Source: Piromyces finnis finn (lineage: Eukaryota; Fungi; Neocallimastigomycota). From it: a stretch of DNA of 36,111 nt. A model generated the notes under the pieces. The model searched no databases. It was not told where the DNA came from and saw nothing but the letters and a program-made list of their open reading frames with translations. A program made the position numbers and the translations under genes. This document shows, piece by piece, positions 1 to 35,966 of this stretch (positions are counted from its first letter, which is position 1; every line of letters begins with the position of its first letter). Where the stretch lies: NCBI GenBank assembly GCA_002104945.1, contig MCFH01000123.1, positions 1 through 36,111 on the forward strand, given 5' to 3'.

Positions 1-182
1 ACATTGCATTCAATTGCTGTGATAACTATGTCAAATTCTTTTTCTTTAATTAAATTAGTGAGTTGAACCATTTCATCTTGAAATTCAACCTCTTCAAAGA
101 GGTCTTGTTCTGACTCATAAGAAATTGACATAGTGCTCTTATCACTGTCACAGTCATTATAATCAATATTGTAATTGTTATT
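1..182 (-). CDS. 5' part of an ankyrin-family gene, paralog of the 16267..17919 gene; runs off the left edge (not in the ORF track)
   Basis: Manual translation from 182 gives NNNYNIDYNDCDSDKSTMSISYESEQDLFEEVEFQDEMVQLTNLIKEKEFDIVITAIECNV. This aligns with DSTETSTMILSNNSYTSDIELFEDIEVSNEMIQPNHLIEEKDFDEVISAIEYNV of the 550-aa protein. A T-rich tract plus AG (184-183, minus strand) suggests a splice acceptor; there is an in-frame ATG at 131-129. Confidence 0.7.
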
Positions 183-3154: not shown

Positions 3155-4435
3155 TTATAATTTTTTAAACAATTTCTCAAATTCTTTTAAACTATAAATA
3201 TTCATTTTAGCTTTATTATCTATGAAACATTTCACAATATCTTCATTAATATTTTTTCTTGTTATGGCAAAATAAAATATAGAACATTTATTTTTGCCTT
3301 TTGAGCGAATAATATAATTAACATTAGCACCGTGTTTTATCAGTAATTTAAGTATTTCACAATTATTTTTAATTATAGCTTGAATTATTGGAATTTTTCC
3401 ATTGACATAATTGATATTACCTTTGAAATACCTTAGTATCAATTTAAGAATATTTATATTTTCAGTTTCTATTGCCATATTTAAAGCGGAACATATAGCT
3501 TTTCCAATATTAATGTAATTTCTTCTTCCTTTTTTAATATATTTCAAAAACAATTTAGTATAATATACTAAATTTAGCTTTATTGAATAAAGTAAAGCGT
3601 TATCAAAATCGTCAATTTTAAATTCTTTACTTAACAAGTAATAAACCATTTTTTCAGACTCTTCCTCCTTTTCAATCATCATTCCCATAACTAACGGATT
3701 TATATGAAACTTTAATTTATGAATATTAATATAATAATCTATACAATCTATGAAATCAAATTTATCATATAGATGGGATTGTCTGTTACAAATTATAATT
3801 TTAAATAATTCTGTATTTGAATTGACATCCGAAAAATAATCTTTTAAATTTCTACTTCTACAACTTTTAAATATTTTATTTAATATCCCTTTTATATTAA
3901 AAAAAATAATTCCAGTAATAATATTTTCAGATGAGATAAGATTAATAAATTTATCTGAATCAATACTGAGTAAATACAATATAGAATATTTATCCTCTTT
4001 CAATAAAGCATAATATAATATTAAATTTTTATATCTATCTATCATGTTTACATTATTTATATTTACATATTTTTTAATATCGAAATTCTCATTAAATAAA
4101 TATGCTTTTATAATATCATTATCAAACATACAATCAATGGTATAAAGTGTTGAATTACTATTATTATTGTTTCTTTCATTATAATGATATCTTAGATGTC
4201 TATTATTATTATTTAATTTTAATCTTTTATTCTCATTTTCATCATCAATAATAATTATTGTTTCTGTTCTATTACGTTTATTCCTTTCTTCTATTGCTCT
4301 ATTACTATTTACGTCACTAAAACAGTTTTTCTCAGTATTTTGATATTCATTTACATTTTCTTCATCATCAATAATTATTATTGTTTCTGTTTTATCATGA
4401 ATATTCTCTTTTTCAAATATTCTATTATTATTCAC
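3155..4435 (-). CDS. Ankyrin-repeat protein segment (426 aa; ORF track uses a GTG start, frame is open further upstream)
   Basis: KIPIIQAIIKNNCEILKLLIKHGANVNY and CSIFYFAITRKNINEDIVKCFIDNKAKMN match the ankyrin consensus. Confidence 0.65.
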   Translation of the reverse strand: MNNNRIFEKENIHDKTETIIIIDDEENVNEYQNTEKNCFSDVNSNRAIEERNKRNRTETIIIIDDENENKRLKLNNNNRHLRYHYNERNNNNSNSTLYTIDCMFDNDIIKAYLFNENFDIKKYVNINNVNMIDRYKNLILYYALLKEDKYSILYLLSIDSDKFINLISSENIITGIIFFNIKGILNKIFKSCRSRNLKDYFSDVNSNTELFKIIICNRQSHLYDKFDFIDCIDYYINIHKLKFHINPLVMGMMIEKEEESEKMVYYLLSKEFKIDDFDNALLYSIKLNLVYYTKLFLKYIKKGRRNYINIGKAICSALNMAIETENINILKLILRYFKGNINYVNGKIPIIQAIIKNNCEILKLLIKHGANVNYIIRSKGKNKCSIFYFAITRKNINEDIVKCFIDNKAKMNIYSLKEFEKLFKKL

Positions 4436-4468
4436 ACCACTAAAGCAGTTTTTCTCAGTATTTTGATA
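4238..4468 (-). repeat. In-frame 123-bp (41-codon) tandem duplication (TEKNCFS...TETIIIIDDE x2)
   Basis: CAGTTTTTCTCAGTATTTTG at 4323 and 4446, and TTCATCATCAATAATTATTATTGTTTCTGTT-like blocks at 4238 and 4361; both offsets are 123 bp. Confidence 0.8.
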
Positions 4469-4497
4469 TGCAATTTTACTATTTTTGTTAGATTCAT

Positions 4498-5544
4498 TTA
4501 AATAGATATTTGAACTATTTTTACATATTTTATTTTTTTTATTAAATAATCAAAAATTATTATATTTATAACATGATTATTATCCTCTAAAGATTTTTCT
4601 ATTATGGTTTTATTTTCGCGATTTCTTAAATTTAAATCAGCGCCATAATCCAATAAAATTTTAAATAGACTATAATCTTGATTTAAATATTTTTCTTTAA
4701 ATGAATTACAACCACAATGTCTGTAAGAAATAAATAATGGATATTCATCATAACCATTACAATTACTATTGACATTAATTTGTTTATTAATTATTGGATG
4801 GAATAATAGACATTTAATCAATTCATGATTATTGTCTTTTATTCCATTAATAAATAAAAGACCAATATTCTTTTCTTTATAGTCATTTTTTATTTTCATA
4901 TATATTTTATCATTATTTTTGCTGAACATTATATTTTTATAAATGGCTTCAAGGTCCTTAATTTCAATAATAATGTTTTTTTTATCATACTTTTTTGGTG
5001 TCGAAATACCTAGTGATAATTCATCTAAATTAATTTTTAATAAGGATCCTATCATCTTGATATATTTTTCTTTATTATCAACAAAAATATCATTTTCAAT
5101 GGATTTTAAAATATATTTTAAATCTATATACGATTTTTTAAAACTTTTATTTAAAAGAAATTTTGGAATAAGAATATTGATTATTTTTTCTTTATTATTA
5201 TTATTTTTAATTAAAGATATTAATATTTCATTAATATCTATTTTATTAAAATTAAATGATTCATTAATGAAAAATGTGTTGCTAAATATTTTAATTTCAT
5301 TAACATTATTAAAATTATATTTTACACTATTCATTAATAAATCTTGAATATTTATATTATTAATAATTTTTAATTTTTTTTGCTTATTTAAAACATTAAT
5401 AAGCATTCTTAAAATATTAGTATATTTGTTATAATATACTGAATTTATAATATAATCAAATTTGACAGTATCATCTGGATATTCATTTACAATTGTTTCA
5501 ATAATATTTTCAAAATATTTATTATGTAAATGATTTTTATCCAT
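4498..5544 (-). CDS. Ankyrin-repeat protein segment (348 aa)
   Basis: EYPLFISYRH...FKILLDYGADLNLRNRENKTIIEKSLEDNN is an ankyrin repeat. Confidence 0.6.
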   Translation of the reverse strand: MDKNHLHNKYFENIIETIVNEYPDDTVKFDYIINSVYYNKYTNILRMLINVLNKQKKLKIINNINIQDLLMNSVKYNFNNVNEIKIFSNTFFINESFNFNKIDINEILISLIKNNNNKEKIINILIPKFLLNKSFKKSYIDLKYILKSIENDIFVDNKEKYIKMIGSLLKINLDELSLGISTPKKYDKKNIIIEIKDLEAIYKNIMFSKNNDKIYMKIKNDYKEKNIGLLFINGIKDNNHELIKCLLFHPIINKQINVNSNCNGYDEYPLFISYRHCGCNSFKEKYLNQDYSLFKILLDYGADLNLRNRENKTIIEKSLEDNNHVINIIIFDYLIKKIKYVKIVQISI

Positions 5545-5616
5545 TTTGTCAATAATTTTTAATAATATAGTATCATAATTTATATAATAATTGCCATTAT
5601 AAGAAAATAAAAAAAG

Positions 5617-6744
5617 TTATTTTAAAATACAATCTATAAATGAATATTTTTTATTTTCGGCATAAAAAAGTAAAAGGTTATAAAAACTAATATTTTTAAC
5701 AACATTTTCATTCATTTTTAAAAATTTTAATAACATTTCAATTATCCATATTTTAGATGAATTTGCTACATAGTATAATATGTTTTCAATAAATGAAATG
5801 TTATAATTTTCAAAATTATATTTTATAATATATTCTAATAAATTTAAATTATTTTCAACTCGACGTGTATAAGATACATCGCCAATAATATATTTATATA
5901 ATTTCAATTTATTTAATATTTTCACGATTTCACTTGAACTTTTTTTGTCATATTTTATTAATATGCTAATAGTTGGGTAATCGTAAGAGTCAACTTTTTT
6001 GTCGATATCCTTATATTCACAATTAAATTTTTCATAATTAAAAGTACGGTTATAGATTTTTTCAGTAAGATTAATATATGTTTTTTCACCGTATTTTAAT
6101 TCATAAATTTGATTATTTATTAAAGGAATCCTGTATTTAAAACAAGTTAAAAATTTAATGATATAAATGAAATTTTTATCTTTTAATTTATAATTTAAAA
6201 CACGCTTTAACATTTCTTCATTTTTGCTTTCAATCAACATTATAATAAAACTTTCAATATTTTTATCTAAATTTTCATTATCAAAGTTTTCTAAAAATTT
6301 TAATATTTTAACTATATCAACTTTCTCAATATAATATTTTTGAATGAAGGATATCAAATTTACCCCTTCGTTATTTACATAATTTGTATTAGCACCCATT
6401 CTCATTAAGGAATGTGCCAATAAAAATTGTTCTTTTATCATTGCATCAAATAATGGTATTTTAACATCGCCATCTATTTTAAATGTATAGTTTAATTCTT
6501 TATAATCAAAATACCTGATAATGCATAAAATTATATTTTTTGTATTTTCATTTTCTTTTTCGACAGTTCCTATAGCACAAGTAAGAACGTCAAACTTATT
6601 ATCTTGGTTCAATTTCATTCTAAATTTATTATAATTACTTTCATTTAATTTTTTTTCAAATGCTTGAGTATCAGTATTATTATCAATACAACATTTAATG
6701 AATTCTATTAATTCATCTATTTTTTCTTTTAACATAACAGCCAT
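5617..6744 (-). CDS. Ankyrin-repeat protein N-terminal segment (375 aa)
   Basis: FDVLTCAI and KIPLFDAMIKEQFLLAHSLMRMGANTNYVN resemble YDVLTNCI and KSPLYAAIANNHFKIADFIISKGGDINF in the 550-aa gene. Confidence 0.6.
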   Translation of the reverse strand: MAVMLKEKIDELIEFIKCCIDNNTDTQAFEKKLNESNYNKFRMKLNQDNKFDVLTCAIGTVEKENENTKNIILCIIRYFDYKELNYTFKIDGDVKIPLFDAMIKEQFLLAHSLMRMGANTNYVNNEGVNLISFIQKYYIEKVDIVKILKFLENFDNENLDKNIESFIIMLIESKNEEMLKRVLNYKLKDKNFIYIIKFLTCFKYRIPLINNQIYELKYGEKTYINLTEKIYNRTFNYEKFNCEYKDIDKKVDSYDYPTISILIKYDKKSSSEIVKILNKLKLYKYIIGDVSYTRRVENNLNLLEYIIKYNFENYNISFIENILYYVANSSKIWIIEMLLKFLKMNENVVKNISFYNLLLFYAENKKYSFIDCILK

Positions 6745-11119: not shown

Positions 11120-12870
11120 TTACTTTGATGGTGTATGTGTATCCGAATAAACTGGTTTCAAAACATACGCGGGATTTGTGGTTAAATTGTTATTAGAATT
11201 AGATTTAAGTTTTGATATCTTACATTTCAGGTAGTAGCCATTATACTTCGCCTCGAACACAAGCTGTTTGTTTGAATCACTTTGGGAATAATTATTTTTG
11301 CTACAATCATGCGGATCTTGATTAATTATTTTAATGTGATTTGATTGTTGAATGGTATTTATAAATTTAATTCTGATGATACTATTAATATCTGGTTCGT
11401 GGTTACTTATCTCATTATTTTGGATATCAAATAAAGTTAAAAATATTTGATTGTTATGATTTTTTATTTGAGTGCTAATACCAGATTTCGTTAACTTTAT
11501 CCCACTTATCAGGTTTTTATTGACGTCCTTTGAATATAGAACCTTATCTAAAACTATTTCAGTCTCATTAAATAACCCATGGAATGTACCGTAGCCTTCA
11601 AAAATACATGATGATTTATTTGTAAAATTTAAAATAATTTTTTCATTAATAAAATTTTCCAATATTTCTTTATTATTTGTGATATGTTCACTTGCGCCTG
11701 TATCATCCTGTATCATAGGTAGGTCCACATAAATGTTATGTAACCATCATTTTTATCATGTGACCTTGAAACATTACTTGGTCATATTTCTTCTGTATTT
11801 TCACTTGGAAAGACATTTTTAAGAGCTAGTTCGTCAAGTATATATTTCATGTGCTCAACCTTTAATTGGTCAGAATGTATGTTTATGTAACATTCATTTT
11901 CAGGGTTAGAAATATTTGGATCATCCATTTTTTCATTACTCTTTATTTTACTTTCAATATTGTCAGCTGTAGGTCCGAACATTGTATTTAATTCTTCATA
12001 GCATGGTGTACTATCTGTGGTTTCATTATTTTCAATGTTGGAACAATATTTATCTTCATTGGCTTCCTTTTTGTATGAGAATGTTTTGTGGGTTTGTTTA
12101 TTAGGATGTGTTTCATTTTTCTTTGTTCTTGTAGCTCGGCATGGATTGTAATGACAGTCCTTAACAGAATGTCCAGAAATGTTGCAAATTATACAATATT
12201 TATTATTTCTATGATGATATTTGTTTATTCTTTTATTTTTTGTGTATTTCTTTTCTATATTATCTATATCCATATAAGCATCATGAAAGTCTCTATATTC
12301 ATTGATGAATGGATTATTATAATGATTGTTTCCATTTCTAGCGTTTCTTGTATTAAAAGAGTTATTATCTCTTTGTTGATTATCTTGTTTATGTTTAAAA
12401 TTTGGGTTGTTATATTCCATCTGATAGCAAATAACAGTATATCTGTTTTTATGATTTCGTATAATGTTTCGGGTGTGTATTGAGAACTCATTAATATTTT
12501 ATCCTTGAGGATATTTGGTAGAGCGTTGTATATAATTGTTATTTTTTCCATGTTTGATTTGTTCATACATGAGTTTTCGAGTAATTTAAATAACTCTATA
12601 ATCTCATTCATGATATTCATGGTTTCCTTAAGGTTGGTGGCCTTGAGAGGTCCTAACCTTCTTAACCACTCTCCATGGTTGGAGGAGTCATCCGACTTGT
12701 ACAAGCTCTTGAGTTTCTCCATCTTCTCATATGCGGACTCACAGTTCATAATGTACCTTTTAACAGAGTCAGTACAATTTGTAAAAATGATTATTCCTGT
12801 GAGTGCATCATTTGGTTCAAATTTGCTTGGTTTCTTGAATGTTTTGTAGTTACTCTTGATGTAACTCCTT
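11120..12870 (-). pseudogene. Degenerate Ty1/copia gag-protease-partial integrase; RT and RNase H deleted, 5' LTR absent
   Basis: Gag-like DALTGIIIFTNCTDSVKRYIMNCESAYEKMEKLKSLY; CCHC knuckle CIICNISGHSVKDC; protease (WTY)DTGASEH plus VLYSKDVNKNLISG; integrase-like CKISKLK and PAYVLKPVYSD. Pieces are joined by a frameshift near 12430, a TGA at 11784-11782 and a 14-bp insertion at 11697-11724. Confidence 0.85.
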
Positions 12871-16266: not shown

Positions 16267-17919
16267 TTATACATTAAAAATCCATTGATCATGATCAATA
16301 TATCTATTAAAATATTTAAGAAATTCATGGTTTTTTATTGTTGTAGATAATATGTAAGTATTTTTATCATCTCCTCCTGCTTTTCTTAATTCTTTTAAAA
16401 TATATTTTACCTTTTGTTCTGATGATCTTTTATCAATAACAAAGAGATTTTCAATAATTTTATAGTTGTCGTTCTTCAAGGCGAAAGTATACCATTCATC
16501 TTGAAAATCGTTGTAATGAAGAAATTCCTTTACCAATAATAAAAATGTTTTATTTTTCTTTTCTTTTATTAATAATTTTAATATATATTGAGGTATATTT
16601 AACTTTTCAATTTTTTTAAATTTGTTTTTTAATATTTCAATAATGTAATCGAAATTTTCATATGAAAAGTTTTTTTGATGAATTAAAAATTGTATCACAT
16701 TGTTGAAGGAATTGTCCTTATCCAAAAATCTATAATTGATATCCGCACCTTTAGAAATAAGAAAGGTGCACACATCTCTTCTATTTATTAATAATGTATA
16801 AATGACTAAAGGTACTGATTCATTAATTAATGAATTTGGAATCTCATAATTGAAATTGGTGTATGAGAATAAGCTTATTATTTTTTTAAGTGAATCAATA
16901 GAAAATCCTGAAGTAATACAATTTGTTAATACGTCATAATCTGAAGAGTTTATATCACTTATTAATATTTCATTTTCTTGATAAAAATAAAATATTCTTT
17001 CCATATTTCCGTTCTTTATAAATTGACTTAATTCCATTCTTTTCTTAATCAAAATTTTATTCAAATATCTGTTAAGATGATTAATATCTAATATATTATT
17101 TAAGAAAATATTTTTATACTTATAGTTAATTATTAATTCATATAATTTAAGGGAGAATCCAGGATATATTATATCATTATTATTATCCATTATGAATTCA
17201 ATTTTTTCTCTAATTGAACTTGGAATATCATAACATGAAAAAAATTTTAATTGATCAAATGAACTACAATAAATACACCTATAGTACCATTGATATGGTA
17301 CATCGAAATTTCTTTCATTAATAATTATTTTATCAAATTGATCTTTCGATATGCTTTTTTTTGATTGGTATATTTTAAGTAATTTAATAACAAAGTTTTT
17401 ATCGCACTTATATTTGATATATTTGGATGCTAAATTGAAGTTAAAACTATAATTGTAAATATAATCTTTAATCTCCATTATATTCCAATTTTTGTTTAAA
17501 AGATATGAAAGAGTTTTAGTAGTTAGTAAATTTTTTTCAATTAATAATTTGAATATATTAATATTGTGTTGAGTAAAATTAATATCGCCCCCTTTGCTGA
17601 TAATGAAATCTGCAATTTTAAAATGATTGTTAGCAATTGCAGCGTATAATGGGGACTTTATTTCACCATTTTTGAAAATGATGAACTTGTTAAGCGGATA
17701 ATTCTTTTTTTCAATTAACAAATCTAAATATGCAATTGGAACATTGTATTCAATTGCAGAAATGACCTCATCAAAATCTTTTTCCTCAATTAAATGGTTT
17801 GGTTGAATCATTTCATTTGATACTTCTATATCCTCAAATAACTCTATATCTGAAGTGTAAGAATTATTTGACAAGATCATTGTTGAAGTTTCAGTACTAT
17901 CAATTTCAAAAGATGACAT
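16267..17919 (-). CDS. Ankyrin-repeat-containing protein, 550 aa, apparently intact and single-exon
   Basis: Uninterrupted ATG-to-TAA ORF in very AT-rich DNA; ankyrin motifs KSPLYAAIANNHFKIADFIISKGGDINF and VPLVIYTLLINRRDVCTFLISKGADINY. Confidence 0.85.
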   Translation of the reverse strand: MSSFEIDSTETSTMILSNNSYTSDIELFEDIEVSNEMIQPNHLIEEKDFDEVISAIEYNVPIAYLDLLIEKKNYPLNKFIIFKNGEIKSPLYAAIANNHFKIADFIISKGGDINFTQHNINIFKLLIEKNLLTTKTLSYLLNKNWNIMEIKDYIYNYSFNFNLASKYIKYKCDKNFVIKLLKIYQSKKSISKDQFDKIIINERNFDVPYQWYYRCIYCSSFDQLKFFSCYDIPSSIREKIEFIMDNNNDIIYPGFSLKLYELIINYKYKNIFLNNILDINHLNRYLNKILIKKRMELSQFIKNGNMERIFYFYQENEILISDINSSDYDVLTNCITSGFSIDSLKKIISLFSYTNFNYEIPNSLINESVPLVIYTLLINRRDVCTFLISKGADINYRFLDKDNSFNNVIQFLIHQKNFSYENFDYIIEILKNKFKKIEKLNIPQYILKLLIKEKKNKTFLLLVKEFLHYNDFQDEWYTFALKNDNYKIIENLFVIDKRSSEQKVKYILKELRKAGGDDKNTYILSTTIKNHEFLKYFNRYIDHDQWIFNV

Positions 17920-22800: not shown

Positions 22801-23479
22801 AAAAAAAAAAAAATGAAAATTTATTTATAATTAAATTTTATAAAACATTATTCCACCAATCATATTTTAATAAAAATATTTTTTCAATGGATGTAAGTAA
22901 CATCTAATAACTTTCTTTTTTATTATTATTGTTATTACATTTTATATTTTAATGTTTATATTTTTTAACTTTAATGGTTTAATTTTAATTATCATACTTT
23001 TACAATACTTTATTGTATTGTTTTATTGTTATTTGACTTTTCATTTTTATTATAAAAAATATCAAATTAAAAAAAAAAAATATATATATATATATAATAA
23101 AATAAATTCCATCGGATTTATTTCCGCATTTAAGATGTCCATTTTATCTTTAGTTATCAGAGAATTTTAAAATTAATGGAAGCTACTTCAATAACTTTTA
23201 AAAACTAAATATAATATAAAATAAAAATAGATTACTTTTCATTCTAATTCTATTATTATCATAATTATTTTATATTAGCTGATAATTTATAAATTTAATA
23301 TTCATGATATTCCTGTAATACATGATTAGTTGGACTTAATTATTGAATATGATTGTTTTAATCCATACTAATTGACTGCGATTTATCCACTTGTTAGTGG
23401 TCCATTATTAACTATGAGAGCTTAGGGAATGACTCAAAATTAAGATATATATGAATAATTAATTCATAGAATTAGATAT

Positions 23480-24083
23480 TGTAAAGATATCAAACGCCTC
23501 TGTTTGATATCTTTAATGTAACTTAAGCCACAAGTATTATTGTTTAAGTTACACAAATTATATTCAGAAAAAGAAAATGAGACATAATTTATTTATTAAT
23601 AATTAAAGTTTAAAACAAAATAAATTATTAATTTATTTTTAATGTTTAACAAGTAAATTAATATTCTCAATTTAAATCCCTAGTTTTAGTATTGTTTTTT
23701 TATAGAAATAGATAAATAATAAATGATTAATATATCAATAATACATGGGCACATATTCAAATTAAATGGTACTTAATTTGAATTGCCAATTGTATTTTAC
23801 TAAAAATAGTTATAGTTTAAATATTTATTAATAATTAAGATTTTAGTGTAGATTTTAAATAATAATATATAAGAAATAAATAGTTATAATATAATATAAA
23901 TGTATTTAGGAAAAATATAAATAGAAGATATTTTTCATCATTTTATCGATGTAATTGTTATTATTAAAATTCTATTATAATAAAAGATATTTTTAATAAA
24001 ACAATTTTTTATTTTTATTTTAAATTTAGTGTTATTGTAATAGAATAGATATCCTAATCTATTCTTTCTGTGTCGACTTTACA
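23480..24083 (+). mobile_element. LTR 1 (604 bp)
   Basis: TG...CA ends with a 7-bp inverted repeat TGTAAAG...CTTTACA; similarity to the other LTRs stops at or within 2 nt of the TG on the left. Confidence 0.93.
23916..23923 (+). promoter_or_regulatory. Candidate LTR TATA box (TATAAATA), starting 35 nt upstream of the inferred transcription start 23951
   Basis: Sequence match plus spacing to the self-primer 11-mer; AT-rich context weakens it as stand-alone evidence. Confidence 0.5.
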
Positions 24084-24094
24084 ATAACAATTAC
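24084..24094 (+). other. Self-priming primer-binding site ATAACAATTAC (also 29790-29800 and 35495-35505)
   Basis: Exact reverse complement of GTAATTGTTAT at 23951-23961 inside the LTR (12 nt including the LTR terminal A). No TGG tRNA-type PBS. Confidence 0.85.
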
Positions 24095-24159
24095 CCAACG
24101 AAGATAGAGAATACGTTAGGGTATCTACCGCCGGGTACAAAAAGCAAGAAAGAACTTTA

Positions 24160-24372
24160 ACTACTGGTTAGAATTGGAAACTACCGCCGAATAAGAAGAA
24201 AGAAGAAATTTTGACTACTGGTTAGAATTGGAAACTACCGCCGAATAAGAAGAAAGAAGAAATTTTGACTACTGGTTAGAATTGGAAACTACCGCCGAAT
24301 AAGAAGAAAGAAGAAATTTTGACTACTGGTTAGAATTAGAAACTACCACCGAGTGCAAGAAGAAAGAAGAAT
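24160..24372 (+). repeat. 54-bp tandem repeat in the 5' leader (3 perfect units, 1 diverged unit, plus a degenerate partial unit from ~24125); repeated at 29866 and 35571
   Basis: Unit ACTACTGGTTAGAATTGGAAACTACCGCCGAATAAGAAGAAAGAAGAAATTTTG starts at 24160, 24214, 24268 and 24322. Confidence 0.95.
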
Positions 24373-24556
24373 TAACCAATAGTAATTAGTAATACAAAAC
24401 TTGTTCGACACTGCTTTGCAGAACGCGTTTGAATAACTTTTGTATTAGGATAAATTGTAGTAGTGTAATTAAAAAAAAAAAAAAAAAAAAATTTAAGATT
24501 ACTTGAAATAGTAGTAAGAAACCATTTTAATTTTATATTATATATTATATTTTGAA

Positions 24557-27500
24557 TTGGAGGATTTAATTAGTGAGTTTGAAAATTTAAATTTAGAAAT
24601 GGGTGATAGGAATGTGGGTGTTTCCGGGAACTCGGGGAACATTATTAATGCTCCACCGACATTTTCTGGTAAACAAAGAGAATTGGATGGATTTTTAACT
24701 AGAGTGGAGTTGGTATTTCGTACTCGACCGACACTGTATAATACAGATCGAGTCAAGGTCGACTTCGTTATATCATACTTTTCTGGTAAACCTTTGGAAT
24801 GGGCTTCAGTGTTGATGAAGAATAATAGTGAGGTTTTAAACCATTATGATGAATTTGTAGATAGGTTGAAGGCTAACTTTGGCAGTTATAGATACGATAC
24901 CGTTGTAGCTAACGGAAAATTAGATAATCTTCGCCAAAGGAAACTTGGTCAGGTATTAGATTACATTACCGAGTTTCAACGTATTAGCCAAAATTCAAGC
25001 TTTAATGATAGCGCAAAAATCTACATGTTTCTGAAAGGTTTATTACCACCACTTAGGGAGAAGTTGGCTTTCATTGAATCAAACCCAACTTCAATTGAAC
25101 AATTGATTTCTTCAACTAAAATAGTTGAAGATATGATGAAAAGGAATTCTTTAAGTGAATTTTATTTTAATGGTAGAAGGGCTAATGATCCTATGGATGT
25201 GGATGTATTTAAAATTAGTAGAGAGAATAAACGAAAAAGGTATGTGAATATTCAAGGATCAAGTAAAAATTACAATGAAAACATAGATAACTTTGAAAAA
25301 GAAAAGAAAAAAGGGTTATGTTTTCTTTGTAAACAACCGGGACATTTAAAATTTAATTGTCCTAATAGAGTAAAGCCCAGAAAAGTGTTAAGAATTGTTA
25401 AAGAAAGGACTCCAAAAATTGTTAATCCAAAAATTTACAAAGTTGGAGTCAAGGGAGTGAAAAGTGATTTAAACCTTGTGGACTTTTACTTGAGTACCAA
25501 TGAAGTTTCGGAAGTTAAAATTAAGGTTTTAATTGATTCCGGTTCTGAATTAAATTTCATTAATCCAAGTCTTGCTGAAGAACTTGGTATTAATTTGGAA
25601 AAAGTAGAACCATTCCGTGTTTCAGGTGTTAGTGATGGAGTTGTTAGTGTTTGGGAAAGGACTGAGAAGTGCATGCTCCGTTGCAAAAATCACTTCGAAG
25701 TAATTCAACTTTATGGATTACAAGTCCCCGGTGTTGATGTTATTCTTGGTTTGCCGTGGATAAAGAAGCATGATCCAAATGCTTTCTACGACTCTAAGAA
25801 AATCGCTTTTAGTTCTGGTTATTGTGCCAGACATTGTAATAAAGGCAAAAGAAAGAGAAAACCAAGAAAGAAGTCAAAGAATGATCAGTTAGATCATGAT
25901 GTTCTCGACCGAAGCTTGACCAAAAAGCCGAAAGTAGATCCCTCTGTCCCAAAAAATGAAGAAAAAGAATATGTTAAAGGCCGCCTTGTTAGAACCATCA
26001 ATGATGAAGATGATAGCGATGATGAATATATTAGTTTTAATAAAAAAGTTAAATGTATTGTAACAAAAATTAATGAAACATGTAATAATGATAACGAATC
26101 ATGTAGTAATAATAATAATAATGGAAAAGATATTAATAAAGATAAATTGGTCGCCGTACCAACCCAATATTTAGAATTTAGTGAAGTGTTTAATGAAAAA
26201 AATTGTGAAGTGTTACCTCCTCATAGACCTTATGATTGTGAAATCAAACTTAAAGATGATTCGACTTTATTTTATGGACCTTTGTATCCATTAACTGAAG
26301 TTGAAAGAGAGGAACTTAAAAAATATATTGATGATAATTTAAATAAAGGTTTTATTAGGAAATCATCGTCTCCTGCTGGTGCCCCAATTTTATTTGTTAA
26401 AAAGAAGGATGGCTCCCTAAGACTTTGTATCGATTATAGAAAGTTGAATGATATTACCATTCGTAATTCATATCCTTTACCTTTAATTAGTGACCTTTTG
26501 GATAGGGTGAAAAATGCTAAGATTTTTACTAAATTAGACCTTAAATCCGCTTATAATCTTGTTCGTATTAAAGAAGGTGACGAATACAAAACGGCTTTTC
26601 GTACTAGATATGGACATTTTGAATATCTGGTTATGCCTTTTGGATTAAAGAATGCACCTGCAACTTTTCAACACTTCATTAACGATGTCCTTAGTGACTG
26701 TTTAGACGATTTTGTTATCTCATATATTGATGATATTCTTATTTATTCTAATAATATCGAAGAACATCATGAGCATGTTAAAAAGGTACTTAAGAAACTA
26801 CTTGAAAATAATCTTTATGTTAAATTAGAAAAATGTGAGTTTGATGTTGAGAAAACCACTTTTCTTGGTTATGTCATTTCAAAGGATGGATTGCAAATGG
26901 ATGAAAATAAAGTTAAAGCAATTCTCGATTGGCCGGTTCCCAAGAATGTTAAAGAGGTTCAGTCTTTTATTGGTTTATGCAACTATTACAGAATTTTTAT
27001 TAAAGACTTTGCTAAAATTGCAAACCCTCTTCACAAACTCACTAGAAAGAATGTTGCTTTTAACTGGGTGAAAGAAGATCAGGACGCTTTTATTTTATTA
27101 AAATCTCTGTTCACGTCAGCTCCTATTCTGAAACATGCGGATAGTAATAAACAATTTATTGTAGAAACTGATGCTAGTAATTATGCTGTCGGTGCTATTC
27201 TCTCTCAAGAATTTGATGGCAAATTACATCCTATTGCATTTCTTTCTAAAAGTTTGACGAGTTGTCAAAGAAACTATCCTATATATGACAAGGAACTTTT
27301 AGCTATTGTAGTTGCTCTTGAAGAATGGCGTCATTATTTAGAAGGTGCACGCCATCCGTTCATAATTTATACTGATCACAAGAATTTAACATTTCCTAGA
27401 AAACCTGAAATGTTATCTCAGAGACAAATTAGATGGAATTTGTTCTTATCCAGATTTGATTTTAAACTCATTTATAGAGCTGGAAAGAAATCCGGTAAGC

Positions 27501-29173: not shown

Positions 29174-29184
29174 AGAGAGAGAGA
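29174..29184 (+). other. Polypurine tract AGAGAGAGAGA (also 34879-34889)
   Basis: Purine run 1 nt upstream of the LTR TG. Confidence 0.85.
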
Positions 29185-29185
29185 T

Positions 29186-29789
29186 TGTAAAGATATCAAA
29201 CGCCTCTGTTTGATATCTTTAATGTAACTTAAGCCACAAGTATTATTGTTTAAGTTACACAAATTATATTCAGAAAAAGAAAATGAGACATAATTTATTT
29301 ATTAATAATTAAAGTTTAAAACAAAATAAATTATTAATTTATTTTTAATGTTTAACAAGTAAATTAATATTCTCAATTTAAATCCCTAGTTTTAGTATTG
29401 TTTTTTTATAGAAATAGATAAATAATAAATGATTAATATATCAATAATACATGGGCACATATTCAAATTAAATGGTACTTAATTTGAATTGCCAATTGTA
29501 TTTTACTAAAAATAGTTATAGTTTAAATATTTATTAATAATTAAGATTTTAGTGTAGATTTTAAATAATAATATATAAGAAATAAATAGTTATAATATAA
29601 TATAAATGTATTTAGGAAAAATATAAATAGAAGATATTTTTCATCATTTTATCGATGTAATTGTTATTATTAAAATTCTATTATAATAAAAGATATTTTT
29701 AATAAAACAATTTTTTATTTTTATTTTAAATTTAGTGTTATTGTAATAGAATAGATATCCTAATCTATTCTTTCTGTGTCGACTTTACA
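29186..29789 (+). mobile_element. LTR 2 (604 bp), shared between units 1 and 2
   Basis: Preceded by a PPT and followed by the PBS; matches LTR 1. Confidence 0.95.
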
Positions 29790-30261
29790 ATAACAATTAC
29801 CCAACGAAGATAGAGAATACGTTAGGGTATCTACCGCCGGGTACAAAAAGCAAGAAAGAACTTTAACTACTGGTTAGAATTGGAAACTACCGCCGAATAA
29901 GAAGAAAGAAGAAATTTTGACTACTGGTTAGAATTGGAAACTACCGCCGAATAAGAAGAAAGAAGAAATTTTGACTACTGGTTAGAATTGGAAACTACCG
30001 CCGAATAAGAAGAAAGAAGAAATTTTGACTACTGGTTAGAATTAGAAACTACCACCGAGTGCAAGAAGAAAGAAGAATTAACCAATAGTAATTAGTAATA
30101 CAAAACTTGTTCGACACTGCTTTGCAGAACGCGTTTGAATAACTTTTGTATTAGGATAAATTGTAGTAGTGTAATTAAAAAAAAAAAAAAAAAAAATTTA
30201 AGATTACTTGAAATAGTAGTAAGAAACCATTTTAATTTTATATTATATATTATATTTTGAA

Positions 30262-33200
30262 TTGGAGGATTTAATTAGTGAGTTTGAAAATTTAAATTTA
30301 GAAATGGGTGATAGGAATGTGGGTGTTTCCGGGAACTCGGGGAACATTATTAATGCTCCACCGACATTTTCTGGTAAACAAAGAGAATTGGATGGATTTT
30401 TAACTAGAGTGGAGTTGGTATTTCGTACTCGACCGACACTGTATAATACAGATCGAGTCAAGGTCGACTTCGTTATATCATACTTTTCTGGTAAACCTTT
30501 GGAATGGGCTTCAGTGTTGATGAAGAATAATAGTGAGGTTTTAAACCATTATGATGAATTTGTAGATAGGTTGAAGGCTAACTTTGGCAGTTATAGATAC
30601 GATACCGTTGTAGCTAACGGAAAATTAGATAATCTTCGCCAAAGGAAACTTGGTCAGGTATTAGATTACATTACCGAGTTTCAACGTATTAGCCAAAATT
30701 CAAGCTTTAATGATAGCGCAAAAATCTACATGTTTCTGAAAGGTTTATTACCACCACTTAGGGAGAAGTTGGCTTTCATTGAATCAAACCCAACTTCAAT
30801 TGAACAATTGATTTCTTCAACTAAAATAGTTGAAGATATGATGAAAAGGAATTCTTTAAGTGAATTTTATTTTAATGGTAGAAGGGCTAATGATCCTATG
30901 GATGTGGATGTATTTAAAATTAGTAGAGAGAATAAACGAAAAAGGTATGTGAATATTCAAGGATCAAGTAAAAATTACAATGAAAACATAGATAACTTTG
31001 AAAAAGAAAAGAAAAAAGGGTTATGTTTTCTTTGTAAACAACCGGGACATTTAAAATTTAATTGTCCTAATAGAGTAAAGCCCAGAAAAGTGTTAAGAAT
31101 TGTTAAAGAAAGGACTCCAAAAATTGTTAATCCAAAAATTTACAAAGTTGGAGTCAAGGGAGTGAAAAGTGATTTAAACCTTGTGGACTTTTACTTGAGT
31201 ACCAATGAAGTTTCGGAAGTTAAAATTAAGGTTTTAATTGATTCCGGTTCTGAATTAAATTTCATTAATCCAAGTCTTGCTGAAGAACTTGGTATTAATT
31301 TGGAAAAAGTAGAACCATTCCGTGTTTCAGGTGTTAGTGATGGAGTTGTTAGTGTTTGGGAAAGGACTGAGAAGTGCATGCTCCGTTGCAAAAATCACTT
31401 CGAAGTAATTCAACTTTATGGATTACAAGTCCCCGGTGTTGATGTTATTCTTGGTTTGCCGTGGATAAAGAAGCATGATCCAAATGCTTTCTACGACTCT
31501 AAGAAAATCGCTTTTAGTTCTGGTTATTGTGCCAGACATTGTAATAAAGGCAAAAGAAAGAGAAAACCAAGAAAGAAGTCAAAGAATGATCAGTTAGATC
31601 ATGATGTTCTCGACCGAAGCTTGACCAAAAAGCCGAAAGTAGATCCCTCTGTCCCAAAAAATGAAGAAAAAGAATATGTTAAAGGCCGCCTTGTTAGAAC
31701 CATCAATGATGAAGATGATAGCGATGATGAATATATTAGTTTTAATAAAAAAGTTAAATGTATTGTAACAAAAATTAATGAAACATGTAATAATGATAAC
31801 GAATCATGTAGTAATAATAATAATAATGGAAAAGATATTAATAAAGATAAATTGGTCGCCGTACCAACCCAATATTTAGAATTTAGTGAAGTGTTTAATG
31901 AAAAAAATTGTGAAGTGTTACCTCCTCATAGACCTTATGATTGTGAAATCAAACTTAAAGATGATTCGACTTTATTTTATGGACCTTTGTATCCATTAAC
32001 TGAAGTTGAAAGAGAGGAACTTAAAAAATATATTGATGATAATTTAAATAAAGGTTTTATTAGGAAATCATCGTCTCCTGCTGGTGCCCCAATTTTATTT
32101 GTTAAAAAGAAGGATGGCTCCCTAAGACTTTGTATCGATTATAGAAAGTTGAATGATATTACCATTCGTAATTCATATCCTTTACCTTTAATTAGTGACC
32201 TTTTGGATAGGGTGAAAAATGCTAAGATTTTTACTAAATTAGACCTTAAATCCGCTTATAATCTTGTTCGTATTAAAGAAGGTGACGAATACAAAACGGC
32301 TTTTCGTACTAGATATGGACATTTTGAATATCTGGTTATGCCTTTTGGATTAAAGAATGCACCTGCAACTTTTCAACACTTCATTAACGATGTCCTTAGT
32401 GACTGTTTAGACGATTTTGTTATCTCATATATTGATGATATTCTTATTTATTCTAATAATATCGAAGAACATCATGAGCATGTTAAAAAGGTACTTAAGA
32501 AACTACTTGAAAATAATCTTTATGTTAAATTAGAAAAATGTGAGTTTGATGTTGAGAAAACCACTTTTCTTGGTTATGTCATTTCAAAGGATGGATTGCA
32601 AATGGATGAAAATAAAGTTAAAGCAATTCTCGATTGGCCGGTTCCCAAGAATGTTAAAGAGGTTCAGTCTTTTATTGGTTTATGCAACTATTACAGAATT
32701 TTTATTAAAGACTTTGCTAAAATTGCAAACCCTCTTCACAAACTCACTAGAAAGAATGTTGCTTTTAACTGGGTGAAAGAAGATCAGGACGCTTTTATTT
32801 TATTAAAATCTCTGTTCACGTCAGCTCCTATTCTGAAACATGCGGATAGTAATAAACAATTTATTGTAGAAACTGATGCTAGTAATTATGCTGTCGGTGC
32901 TATTCTCTCTCAAGAATTTGATGGCAAATTACATCCTATTGCATTTCTTTCTAAAAGTTTGACGAGTTGTCAAAGAAACTATCCTATATATGACAAGGAA
33001 CTTTTAGCTATTGTAGTTGCTCTTGAAGAATGGCGTCATTATTTAGAAGGTGCACGCCATCCGTTCATAATTTATACTGATCACAAGAATTTAACATTTC
33101 CTAGAAAACCTGAAATGTTATCTCAGAGACAAATTAGATGGAATTTGTTCTTATCCAGATTTGATTTTAAACTCATTTATAGAGCTGGAAAGAAATCCGG

Positions 33201-34854
33201 TAAGCCTGATATCCTGTCTCGTAGAAGTGACCATGTAGAGAATAATATTAATTCTGATGTTTCTTGTCTTACTATTTCGTTTCATCATAGCGATAACAAA
33301 CCGTTAATCGATTCTATTTTATTAGAACTTAAAAATGACGATTTGTATAATTCTATTGTCCAATTTAAAATGAATGGTTCTGCATGTAATGCACCTATTA
33401 AAAATATTGATAAAGTTATTATTGATAATGAAGGATTTTTGTTATATAATAATCTTATTTATGTTCCTAAATCTCTTAGGACAAGAGTTTTGGAACTTCA
33501 TCATGATTCTGTTGCTGCTGGTCATTTCGGTATTAAGAAAACCACTGAACTGATTTCCAGAAACTTTTGGTGGCCAAGGTTTCATTCAGATGTTAAATCT
33601 TTTATCAAATCTTGCGTGACTTGTTGCAAATCCAAAGTCCCCAGACATAAGCCTTATGGATTGTTATCCCCTTTGGACACTCCCAGTAGGCCCTGGTCTG
33701 ATATTTCTATTGATTTTATTGTTGATCTTCCTAAGTCCAGAGATATGACAACTCTCATGGTTGTTGTCGATAGATTTACTAAATTTGCTCACGCCATTCC
33801 TTTACGTTGTCTTCCTACTGCTTCGATTGCTGCTGATGCTTTTATTGCTAATGTCTTCCGTTTGCATGGTCTTCCTGATTCCATCATTTCTGATAGAGGC
33901 TCGCAATTTACTTCTGACTTTTGGTCAAGACTTTGTGACCTTCTTAATATCAATCATTCATTATCAACTGCCAACCATCCGCAGACAGATGGTCAAACGG
34001 AGAGGGTGAACGGCATATTAGAACAATATTTCCGTTGTTTTATAAATAAAAAGCAGAATAACTGGGTTGATCTTATCCCATTTGCTGAATTTGCATATAA
34101 TAATACTTTACAACAATCTATAAATCAATCTCCATTCTTTGCTAATTATGGTTTTCATCCAAAGTTCAGCTTAGAAATTCCAGCTAATGATAGACCTAGT
34201 AGAGCTGAACAAAGAGTAATTGATATGAATGAAAACTTTAAATTATTAAAAGAAAACTTAGAAAAAGCAAAAGAAACATATAAGAAATATGCCGATATGA
34301 AGAGAATGATTCCCCCGGAGTTCGAAGTGGGAAAGAAGGTATGGTTATTGAAAGATTCTCCTGGAACTAACCTAAAGAGAAAATTAGCACCTCAAATGCT
34401 TGGCCCATTTGAGATAATTGGAAAAGTTAGTTCTCTCGCTTTCAAATTGAAACTTCCAAAGACAATGAGATGTCATCCAGTCTTTCATGTTTCATTGTTA
34501 GAACCATACTTTGAAAACAAGTTTAACGACAGGTCTAATCGTAGGAAGAGGAACATTCACCTTAACACAGATTTAATTGAAAAAATTCCAGAGAAAATTG
34601 AAAAGATGAAATCTGTTAATGGTGAAACATTTTATAAGTTATCATGGAAAGGATTTGACAAATCCACTTGGATTTCTGAAGATCAGATTCCAGATAAACA
34701 ATTAATACAAGAGTTTGAAAGAAACTCTAAAAAGTCAAAATATAAGTCGAAAGACTCCTCCATGAAAATTAGAAAGAATAAAGTTGGTAATCTAATCAAG
34801 CACAGATACCAACCATTTGTAATTGAAATTCCTTCGAGAAAAGATTCCTTATAA
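30262..34854 (+). CDS. Single-ORF Gag-Pol polyprotein, copy 2 (first ATG 30304)
   Basis: Translation identical to copy 1 in the ORF track. Confidence 0.97.
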   Translation: MEDLISEFENLNLEMGDRNVGVSGNSGNIINAPPTFSGKQRELDGFLTRVELVFRTRPTLYNTDRVKVDFVISYFSGKPLEWASVLMKNNSEVLNHYDEFVDRLKANFGSYRYDTVVANGKLDNLRQRKLGQVLDYITEFQRISQNSSFNDSAKIYMFLKGLLPPLREKLAFIESNPTSIEQLISSTKIVEDMMKRNSLSEFYFNGRRANDPMDVDVFKISRENKRKRYVNIQGSSKNYNENIDNFEKEKKKGLCFLCKQPGHLKFNCPNRVKPRKVLRIVKERTPKIVNPKIYKVGVKGVKSDLNLVDFYLSTNEVSEVKIKVLIDSGSELNFINPSLAEELGINLEKVEPFRVSGVSDGVVSVWERTEKCMLRCKNHFEVIQLYGLQVPGVDVILGLPWIKKHDPNAFYDSKKIAFSSGYCARHCNKGKRKRKPRKKSKNDQLDHDVLDRSLTKKPKVDPSVPKNEEKEYVKGRLVRTINDEDDSDDEYISFNKKVKCIVTKINETCNNDNESCSNNNNNGKDINKDKLVAVPTQYLEFSEVFNEKNCEVLPPHRPYDCEIKLKDDSTLFYGPLYPLTEVEREELKKYIDDNLNKGFIRKSSSPAGAPILFVKKKDGSLRLCIDYRKLNDITIRNSYPLPLISDLLDRVKNAKIFTKLDLKSAYNLVRIKEGDEYKTAFRTRYGHFEYLVMPFGLKNAPATFQHFINDVLSDCLDDFVISYIDDILIYSNNIEEHHEHVKKVLKKLLENNLYVKLEKCEFDVEKTTFLGYVISKDGLQMDENKVKAILDWPVPKNVKEVQSFIGLCNYYRIFIKDFAKIANPLHKLTRKNVAFNWVKEDQDAFILLKSLFTSAPILKHADSNKQFIVETDASNYAVGAILSQEFDGKLHPIAFLSKSLTSCQRNYPIYDKELLAIVVALEEWRHYLEGARHPFIIYTDHKNLTFPRKPEMLSQRQIRWNLFLSRFDFKLIYRAGKKSGKPDILSRRSDHVENNINSDVSCLTISFHHSDNKPLIDSILLELKNDDLYNSIVQFKMNGSACNAPIKNIDKVIIDNEGFLLYNNLIYVPKSLRTRVLELHHDSVAAGHFGIKKTTELISRNFWWPRFHSDVKSFIKSCVTCCKSKVPRHKPYGLLSPLDTPSRPWSDISIDFIVDLPKSRDMTTLMVVVDRFTKFAHAIPLRCLPTASIAADAFIANVFRLHGLPDSIISDRGSQFTSDFWSRLCDLLNINHSLSTANHPQTDGQTERVNGILEQYFRCFINKKQNNWVDLIPFAEFAYNNTLQQSINQSPFFANYGFHPKFSLEIPANDRPSRAEQRVIDMNENFKLLKENLEKAKETYKKYADMKRMIPPEFEVGKKVWLLKDSPGTNLKRKLAPQMLGPFEIIGKVSSLAFKLKLPKTMRCHPVFHVSLLEPYFENKFNDRSNRRKRNIHLNTDLIEKIPEKIEKMKSVNGETFYKLSWKGFDKSTWISEDQIPDKQLIQEFERNSKKSKYKSKDSSMKIRKNKVGNLIKHRYQPFVIEIPSRKDSL

Positions 34855-34890: not shown

Positions 34891-35494
34891 TGTAAAGATA
34901 TCAAACGCCTCTGTTTGATATCTTTAATGTAACTTAAGCCACAAGTATTATTGTTTAAGTTACACAAATTATATTCAGAAAAAGAAAATGAGACATAATT
35001 TATTTATTAATAATTAAAGTTTAAAACAAAATAAATTATTAATTTATTTTTAATGTTTAACAAGTAAATTAATATTCTCAATTTAAATCCCTAGTTTTAG
35101 TATTGTTTTTTTATAGAAATAGATAAATAATAAATGATTAATATATCAATAATACATGGGCACATATTCAAATTAAATGGTACTTAATTTGAATTGCCAA
35201 TTGTATTTTACTAAAAATAGTTATAGTTTAAATATTTATTAATAATTAAGATTTTAGTGTAGATTTTAAATAATAATATATAAGAAATAAATAGTTATAA
35301 TATAATATAAATGTATTTAGGAAAAATATAAATAGAAGATATTTTTCATCATTTTATCGATGTAATTGTTATTATTAAAATTCTATTATAATAAAAGATA
35401 TTTTTAATAAAACAATTTTTTATTTTTATTTTAAATTTAGTGTTATTGTAATAGAATAGATATCCTAATCTATTCTTTCTGTGTCGACTTTACA
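34891..35494 (+). mobile_element. LTR 3 (604 bp), shared between units 2 and 3
   Basis: Preceded by a PPT and followed by the PBS, 54-bp repeats and gag start. Confidence 0.95.
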
Positions 35495-35966
35495 ATAACA
35501 ATTACCCAACGAAGATAGAGAATACGTTAGGGTATCTACCGCCGGGTACAAAAAGCAAGAAAGAACTTTAACTACTGGTTAGAATTGGAAACTACCGCCG
35601 AATAAGAAGAAAGAAGAAATTTTGACTACTGGTTAGAATTGGAAACTACCGCCGAATAAGAAGAAAGAAGAAATTTTGACTACTGGTTAGAATTGGAAAC
35701 TACCGCCGAATAAGAAGAAAGAAGAAATTTTGACTACTGGTTAGAATTAGAAACTACCACCGAGTGCAAGAAGAAAGAAGAATTAACCAATAGTAATTAG
35801 TAATACAAAACTTGTTCGACACTGCTTTGCAGAACGCGTTTGAATAACTTTTGTATTAGGATAAATTGTAGTAGTGTAATTAAAAAAAAAAAAAAAAAAA
35901 ATTTAAGATTACTTGAAATAGTAGTAAGAAACCATTTTAATTTTATATTATATATTATATTTTGAA

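Follow-up and report, generated by a model that had tools for sequence, protein, structure and literature searches.

Predicted Tf1-type self-priming of an LTR retrotransposon in the gut fungus Piromyces finnis, with co-varying primer and primer-binding site pairs in its relatives

Contig MCFH01000123.1 of the gut fungus Piromyces finnis (Neocallimastigomycota) carries a long terminal repeat (LTR) retrotransposon whose sequence directly after the LTR reads ATAACAATTACCCAACG, with no TGG in its first bases, and the question that this locus raises is how such an element begins its reverse transcription. We compared the window, that is the whole 36,111-nucleotide stretch (positions 1-36,111), with fetched contigs that encode relatives of the element (loci L001 and so on). 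A sequence-only reading of the window had proposed that the element, like Tf1 of fission yeast, folds the 5' end of its own RNA onto the primer-binding site (PBS). We find that the element probably does prime itself as Tf1 does, without a tRNA primer, and we hold this with good confidence on the strength of the complementarity at the LTR junction and of its covariation in related families.

The 11 nt that follow the LTR (24084-24094, ATAACAATTAC) are complementary at 11 of 11 positions to an internal LTR segment, here called the arm (23951-23961, GTAATTGTTAT), at an offset of 0 from the LTR end, and the exact reverse complement claimed by the sequence-only reading is read at just these positions. 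A further pair, T23962:A24083, lengthens the duplex to 12 bp. An 11-bp pair at offset 0 falls within the published detection rule for self-priming, which calls for a pairing of 10 bp or more that begins 0-5 bp downstream of the LTR (PMC6317226). With no TGG, the PBS cannot match the CCA 3' end of a tRNA, and a TGG start is seen in none of the nine PBS types of the relatives described below, so that a PBS of tRNA type is found in none of them. Scans for tRNA genes in the window and in 30 related loci found none, and an Rfam search of 23400-24700 gave no match.

How surprising a single such match is depends on the base composition, as host DNA in the window has 15-20% G+C and the LTR ~17%. On both strands of the 36-kb window the 11-mer is expected 0.10 times and was found 7 times, six of these being arm and PBS in the three LTR/junction copies of the array described below. 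The flanks of the seventh, a copy of GTAATTGTTAT at 171-181 (+), show no homology to an LTR, and it lies in AT-rich DNA, for which reasons we take it as chance. Scaled from the window expectation, the chance of the 11-mer on one strand of the 604-nt LTR is ~1e-3. When the 670 nt upstream were shuffled 5000 times with dinucleotides preserved, 111 shuffles matched a 10-nt version, and adding the 11th base, which is a G where 8% of bases are G, cuts that figure to ~2e-3, giving an overall chance of about 1-2 in 1000 for one LTR.

The case for self-priming is strong in silico because the relatives hold nine co-varying primer/PBS pairs in one geometry. The LTRs of L001 and L002 are ~70% identical to that of the window, and their invariant islands are the TATA block (26 nt), the arm with its flanks, and the LTR end with the PBS. 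In L003, whose Pol is 79% identical, the pair reads GTATTAGTTAT / ATAACTAATAC, and each of its two arm changes relative to the window is accompanied by the complementary change in the PBS. The more distant gut-fungus-type families carry wholly different pairs in an unchanged layout, with the arms ATAGTTGGAAAAT, GAGTTTTTAT, AGTGTTTTTAT, GTGCTTTTAT, GTAAGATTAT, AGCGTTACTAT and AGAATTAGTAT, which together with GTAATTGTTAT and GTATTAGTTAT make up the nine arm/PBS types among the AT-rich gut-fungus-type relatives. The PBS stands at offset 0 after ...T(T/G)ACA in 9/9 types, that is, in all gut-fungus-type relatives with a readable junction, and in 8/9 a TATA[AT]A[AT] precedes the arm by 33-43 nt; L021 has no canonical TATA, and a TATTTAA variant is found there ~38 nt upstream of the arm. 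Compensatory change between the PBS and the 11-mer, which the sequence-only reading had put forward as a way to check its proposal, is thus borne out by nine pair types, and the complementarity that self-priming needs to see preserved in related families is preserved in 9/9 types with the same geometry.

Counted position by position, all 90 cells for PBS bases 1-10 hold a Watson-Crick pair, with 0 G.U pairs or mismatches, a count that is partly circular because the arms came from an exact-complement search in which families with mismatches would be missed, and that we retain with this caveat because the LTR-end anchor is independent of the search and because shuffles were also run for each family (chance of a 10-nt match 0.0008-0.068 per family). 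When the register is slid by 1-3 the paired fraction is 33-58%. PBS positions 3-10 show 2-4 pair types each; the pairing reaches one base into the LTR (T:A, in 8/9 types) and is at chance level at LTR -2 and at PBS positions 11-12. A three-feature search of 786 kb for an arm-PBS complement, an LTR-end CA and an upstream TATA returned 38 hits on the element strand and, as a control, 9 on the other. Loci without a hit mostly have no LTR junction on their contig, and the 5' LTR of L007 and L010 is rearranged or truncated.

The arrangement recurs outside the gut-fungus-type families. GC-rich fungal relatives (~42% identity) have pairs of 9-10 bp with differing sequences at an offset of +1/+2, and a relative in Batrachochytrium dendrobatidis has a 12-bp pair with one G.U, its arm lying 36-37 nt after a TATA. 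Together, the covariation of PBS and partner over nine types, the chytrid and GC-rich relatives and the lack of a tRNA-type PBS support the self-priming proposal in silico. Nine co-varying pairs form an unusually clean natural compensatory series, far better than the complementarity within a single element that is usually at hand.

Self-priming of this kind requires the RNA to begin at the arm. The 11-mer starts 35 nt after the first base of TATAAATA, as the sequence-only reading had it. TATA[AT]A[AT] occurs three times in this very AT-rich LTR, at 23866 and 23895 besides 23916, so that the spacing by itself is weak evidence. It counts for more only because LTRs of ~70% identity share an unchanged 26-nt block around 23916; of the three motifs, the one at 23916 alone lies inside this block. 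Across the families, the TATA block lies 33-43 nt upstream (8/9 types), the arm starts with a purine preceded by a pyrimidine (8/9) and the complementarity ends at that base. A purine after a pyrimidine is the usual start dinucleotide of RNA polymerase II. From these indicators we infer that transcription starts at about G23951. AATAAA lies 28-44 nt downstream of the arm start, which would make R short, roughly 50-70 nt, with a putative poly(A) site at its end. An exact-protein look-up of the window open reading frame (ORF) for transcript contigs that would mark the start gave no record, and a promoter/terminator scan, bacterial in design, gave 8 sites versus 8.1 expected and was uninformative. 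In some relatives the end of U3 just upstream of the arm resembles the PBS (L008:278-314, L023 ~1049-1071, L046 ~5960-5985, L047 ~5786-5818); such an end might pair with the arm into a hairpin spanning the presumed start. The hairpin would occur solely at the U3-R junction, in the RNA's 3' copy, and the element of the window shows nothing of the kind.

The RNA around the PBS is predicted to be highly structured. Folding 23951-24100 gave a molecule closed by the arm-PBS helix, with a minimum free energy (MFE) of -27.8 kcal/mol (z = -4.2). Over 23951-24140 the predicted fold has a stem between U5 and the leader (24047-24075 with 24099-24126) that leaves arm and PBS unpaired (-41.4 kcal/mol, z = -3.8). 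RNAalifold applied to the window, L001, L002, L016 and L003 gave this U5-leader stem 19 pairs, 10 of them compensated in at least one sequence. The sequence-only reading had listed as an alternative the pairing of TATTCTTT (24060-24067) with AGAGAATA (24106-24113); the pairing exists, with one G.U, but it is part of the conserved U5-leader stem and not an alternative to it. Likewise, the 9-bp U5 hairpin formed by AGAATAGAT and ATCTATTCT is present where it was reported but is private to this element and not conserved, and as a functional analogue of the U5-inverted repeat (U5-IR) stem we rejected it, since the relatives do not have it.

A second U5 segment, TGTTATTGTAA, complements 24079-24089, that is, the last 5 nt of the LTR and the first 6 nt of the PBS. 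Of 16 loci searched for such a PBS-overlapping complement, 8 had a significant one (at most 7/300 shuffles as good) and L011 a weaker one (13/300), covering six PBS types; besides the window these loci are L001, L002, L008, L011, L021, L023, L025 and L027. The complement spans the last 1-6 nt of the LTR and the first 4-9 nt of the PBS and changes with the PBS type, and it is absent from L003, L013, L016, L022, L029, L033 and L046.

The steps that we propose are as follows. The RNA would start at about G23951, 35 nt after the conserved TATA, with R ending after the AATAAA at 23979 or 23995. Its first 11 nt would fold back onto the PBS at 24084-24094, which the U5-leader stem (24048-24067 with 24106-24125) may hold ready in its loop. 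The RNase H domain is present and intact in the element, and the enzyme would then cut the RNA duplex after nucleotide 11, between 23961 and 23962, a position that follows from A24083 having to be the first templated base. Extension of the 11-nt RNA over U5 and R would yield minus-strand strong-stop DNA of ~122 nt that carries the 11 nt of RNA, and strand transfer would proceed through the short R. The PBS of the progeny would presumably be recopied from the primer, and with recopying in each cycle a perfect arm/PBS pairing is to be expected despite the drift in sequence between families.

Several points weigh against this reading. The transcription start is placed by inference in a genome where TATA-like strings are common, and the RNA start, the strong-stop DNA and the cleavage product are all predictions. 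The unconstrained fold of 23951-24140 is favoured over the fold in which the arm-PBS helix is nested (-41.4 versus -35.5 kcal/mol); if both formed at once, the arm-PBS helix and the U5-leader stem would amount to a pseudoknot, a structure that lies beyond the scoring of the folding tools used, and the U5 segment TGTTATTGTAA is a rival partner for PBS bases 1-6. L024, L026 and L028, which are AT-rich and have enough flank, show no clear LTR junction or complement. To these are added the partial circularity of the cell count, and a test for tRNA priming that covered the TGG, the tRNA 3' end and the covariation, this last being the sole argument against a match to internal tRNA fragments.

Against this background the other explanations of the match can be weighed. 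That it is a chance product of a very AT-rich LTR might be argued from the ~17% G+C, from the 2% of shuffles that yield the 10-mer and from the unrelated 11-mer copy at 171-181; however, the match recurs at the LTR junction with different sequences in nine families, in the chytrid element and in the GC-rich relatives, and because of this covariation and recurrence we regard chance as refuted, its probability being practically nil. Nor does priming by a host tRNA, a tRNA half or another small RNA that matches ATAACAATTAC by coincidence seem at all credible, even though the scanned DNA held no tRNA gene and host tRNAs thus lay outside the comparison: the PBS lacks the TGG that a CCA 3' end would pair with, and a shared tRNA would fix the PBS, whereas close relatives have nine PBS sequences, each matching its own LTR. 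Cytosolic tRNA stems, moreover, are not as rich in A+T as this PBS (82%).

The helix might instead be a structural RNA element, serving packaging, dimerisation or translation control, while something else primes. The region is indeed highly structured (z about -4) and further co-varying helices lie nearby, yet a structural helix has no need to begin at the LTR junction, where the complement stands at offset 0 in the gut-fungus-type junctions and at +1/+2 in distant relatives; the first leader bases hold no other (TGG...) PBS candidate, and pairing free of G.U and mismatches, partly circular as that count is, fits recopying of the PBS. We consider this explanation very improbable. Self-priming with another geometry, in which the RNA has its 5' end upstream of 23951, or in which the arm pairs in trans with a second RNA packaged alongside, so that the primer is longer or derived from that partner, is unlikely, though the most probable of these rivals. 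The start at 23951 is a prediction, and extra TATA-like motifs are at hand (23866, 23895); the PBS-like bases upstream of the arm in L008, L023 and L046/L047 could form a hairpin if transcribed; and an intramolecular arm-PBS helix combined with the U5-leader stem would need a pseudoknot. Against it, the complementarity stops at the first base of the arm in 9/9 types, with a purine there and a pyrimidine before it in 8/9, and only the 23916 TATA lies inside the conserved block.

If Tf1-type self-priming from about G23951 is accepted, a more speculative extension, possible but doubtful to us, is that it works not as a plain fold-back but as a regulated RNA switch in which the PBS is masked and exposed in turn and in which the primers are family-specific "addresses". 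In the masked state the co-varying U5 hairpin may cover the end of the LTR and 4-9 nt at the start of the PBS; in the exposed state the PBS may stand in the U5-leader-stem loop, where the free 5' end would pair with it as a pseudoknot. Recopying of the PBS would let arm and PBS drift rapidly into such addresses and, if the idea is true, they would keep co-resident families (nine pair types) from priming each other's RNA.

The mechanism itself is known. Tf1 anneals bases 1-11 of its RNA to the PBS, and RNase H then cleaves between base 11 and base 12 (PMC7175516). Self-priming has been demonstrated in Tf1, and in Tj1 it was inferred from complementarity of the same kind (PMC4600332). Tf1 also requires a U5-IR-like stem-loop, according to Lin and Levin 1998 as cited in PMC4600332. 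The Piromyces element shares with Tf1 the single gag-pol ORF, and with Tf1, Tf2 and Tj1 the chromodomain integrase, a PBS directly after the LTR that is complementary to ~11 nt at the presumed 5' end of the RNA, the lack of a tRNA PBS, and extra U5 helices beside the PBS. It differs from Tf1 in its host, a Neocallimastigomycota gut fungus and not an ascomycete yeast, in that its self-priming is known from sequence alone, in a leader of 515 nt with tandem repeats and an A-run, in a U5 complement that overlaps the PBS, and in a Gag that keeps a CCHC knuckle. To our knowledge, the Gag of Tf1 has none. The sequence-only reading had presented the knuckle as a distinctive trait: it is present, and its CCHC residues are invariant in 9 relatives, but such a knuckle is usual in the Tf1/sushi-Tcn1 group. 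A likeness to retroviruses is also apparent, in which a stem between U5 and the leader surrounds the tRNA PBS: here too a co-varying stem loops out the PBS, and a U5 segment pairs with the terminal inverted repeat of the LTR in the way of the retroviral U5-IR. Unlike in retroviruses, the primer would be the element's own 5' end and not a tRNA, and in many of the families the U5 complement runs 4-9 nt into the PBS.

Other lineages place the element more broadly. The Tcn1 clade comprises chromodomain Ty3/gypsy elements of basidiomycetes, of a chytrid (BatDenTy3-1, B. dendrobatidis) and of non-seed plants, among them moss and club-moss (PMC2864245), and the related element in B. dendrobatidis has an equal arm/PBS/TATA geometry. 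Self-priming has been proposed for Cryptococcus Tcn1 (PMC7175516) and predicted for TAR copia elements and the majority of Tcn1-clade elements in plants (PMC6317226). For SM-Tcn1 of Selaginella, evidence was reported for neither kind of priming (PMC2864245). The Tf1/sushi group has been described as self-priming (Butler et al. 2001, as cited in PMC6317226 and PMC4600332). Sushi-type elements of vertebrates live in animal hosts, and the nearest named non-fungal Pol relatives of the Piromyces element are from frog and fish (44-47%). Among lineage markers SH3_Tf2-1 is present, and the identity ranking among named proteins rests on pairwise comparison. A limited literature search found no paper on these elements or on their priming in Neocallimastigomycota.

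The claim that the locus extends the mechanism well beyond its tested range was right in that the host is an early-diverging fungus (Neocallimastigomycota), but its novelty was overstated, because earlier papers had already predicted self-priming in the Tf1/sushi group (fungi and vertebrates), in Tcn1 of Cryptococcus and in the Tcn1 clade of plants (PMC6317226, PMC7175516, PMC4600332). Experimental tests, as distinct from predictions, are confined to fission yeasts. The known mechanism is unchanged and the Piromyces element is a well-supported new example, which adds Neocallimastigomycota to the hosts of Tf1-type self-priming elements, with Batrachochytrium as a second chytrid-grade example. 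This suggests an old origin of self-priming in the lineage of fungal chromoviruses to which Tf1, Tcn1 and sushi belong. The result also offers a rule for locating LTR junctions in AT-rich genomes where searches for a tRNA PBS fail.

The element lies in a tandem array, LTR-internal-LTR-internal-LTR-internal, that runs from 23480 to the end of the window with a period of 5705/5706 bp, its third unit being incomplete at the window end. The three LTRs, 604 bp each, are identical in sequence, and the sole difference between internal units 1 and 2 is one A in a 21-nt A-run. The gag-pol product of unit 1 contains, in order, a Ty3-type capsid, the CCHC knuckle (amino acids 240-256), protease, reverse transcriptase (RT), RNase H, integrase (IN), SH3_Tf2-1 and a chromodomain, the last with E = 1.2e-5, just above the Pfam cut-off. 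Its closest solved relative is Ty3 Gag-Pol (E = 1e-155). With this domain set and this match, the element is, on its predicted proteins, an intact chromovirus-type Ty3/gypsy LTR retrotransposon (gag-protease-RT-RNase H-IN with a C-terminal chromodomain). Because its LTRs are identical and its ORFs open, the copies look young and intact, and they could serve as a test system or tool in fungi that have no genetic tools. The positions of all features are collected in the table.

Table. Features of the LTR retrotransposon array and of its putative priming signals in the window
Feature	Position	Strand	Remarks
5' LTR of unit 1, TGTAAAG...CTTTACA	23480..24083	+	identical to 29186-29789 and 34891-35494; terminal inverted repeat read
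U3 ~23480-23950; R+U5 ~23951-24083 (putative)	within 5' LTR of unit 1	+	
Promoter block with TATAAATA (23916-23923)	23899..23924	+	invariant in window, L001 and L002; LTRs only ~70% identical
Putative self-primer arm GTAATTGTTAT	23951..23961	+	exact complement of PBS; invariant in L001, L002, L016; compensated change in L003
Two AATAAA poly(A) signals	23979-23984, 23995-24000	+	AATAAA(G) aligned in L001, L002
U5 segment TGTTATTGTAA, U5-IR-like stem masking part of PBS	24030..24040	+	complements 24079-24089; 1/300 shuffles as good
9-bp hairpin AGAATAGAT/ATCTATTCT	24042-24050 / 24057-24065	+	15-nt insertion versus L001, L002, L016, L003
U5-leader stem, 5' strand	24048..24067	+	RNAalifold; in MFE fold of 23951-24140
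PBS ATAACAATTAC, no TGG	24084..24094	+	begins at first base 3' of LTR (after ...CTTTACA)
U5-leader stem, 3' strand	24106..24125	+	LTR end and PBS enclosed in ~38-nt loop
Leader tandem repeats, 54 nt x 4.2, with ACTACCGCC	24142..24371	+	
21-nt A-run in leader	24471..24491	+	one A fewer in unit 2
gag-pol ORF of unit 1, single, 1516 amino acids	ATG 24599 to stop 29149	+	
Polypurine tract AGAGAGAGAGA	29174..29184	+	one base 5' of next LTR
Shared LTR 2 (3' LTR of unit 1 = 5' LTR of unit 2)	29186..29789	+	arm 29657-29667; PBS 29790-29800
gag-pol ORF of unit 2, intact	30304..34854 (open frame 30262-34854)	+	unit identity
Shared LTR 3	34891..35494	+	arm 35362-35372; PBS 35495-35505

The nearest Pol relatives, at 75-89% identity, come from metagenome contigs, with one named relative from Orpinomyces. 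The best named ones are fungal, frog and fish proteins at 44-53%, plant chromoviruses reach 39-40%, and the B. dendrobatidis protein is 52% identical over RT-IN. Purine tracts lie at the place equivalent to the polypurine tract in L003, L008, L011 and L012. A full-length polyprotein copy of 78% identity (protein P0009) is filed as a hypothetical protein of an Erysipelotrichaceae bacterium metagenome-assembled genome; its source is evidently a mis-binned gut-fungus contig.

Head-to-tail arrays were also seen elsewhere, in L001 (period 6019, 100% identity), L002, L029 and the GC-rich L069 (94%). The two units of L002 are only 82.7% identical, which argues that this array is not a simple assembly loop. 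Such arrays may arise by LTR recombination or by recombination of cDNA into a resident copy, and those on metagenome contigs are possibly assembly artefacts.

The leader between PBS and gag measures 515 nt. Leader repeats of other periods (14-54 nt) occur in L001, L002, L003, L011, L013, L016 and L022; those of the closest families have a common CTACC(GCC) core, and the A-runs range from 21 to ~100 nt. A role of the repeats in packaging, as a protein-binding array or as a translation enhancer is in each case possible.

The rest of the window holds host genes and traces of another element. An ORF at 16270-17919 (-) with ankyrin repeats is 99% identical to Piromyces finnis BCR36DRAFT_305058, a match by which the sequence itself identifies the host, and three consecutive host ORFs at 3155-6744 (-), also with ankyrin repeats, may be exons of one gene. 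Broken ORFs at 11120-12749 (-), where the local G+C is 26-30%, encode a Pol polyprotein beta-barrel domain (PF22936, E = 2e-12) and are probably the remnant of a different, copia-like retroelement. Between 19000 and 22000 the G+C rises to ~30%, and the only ORFs there are short (71-113 amino acids), with no Pfam match.

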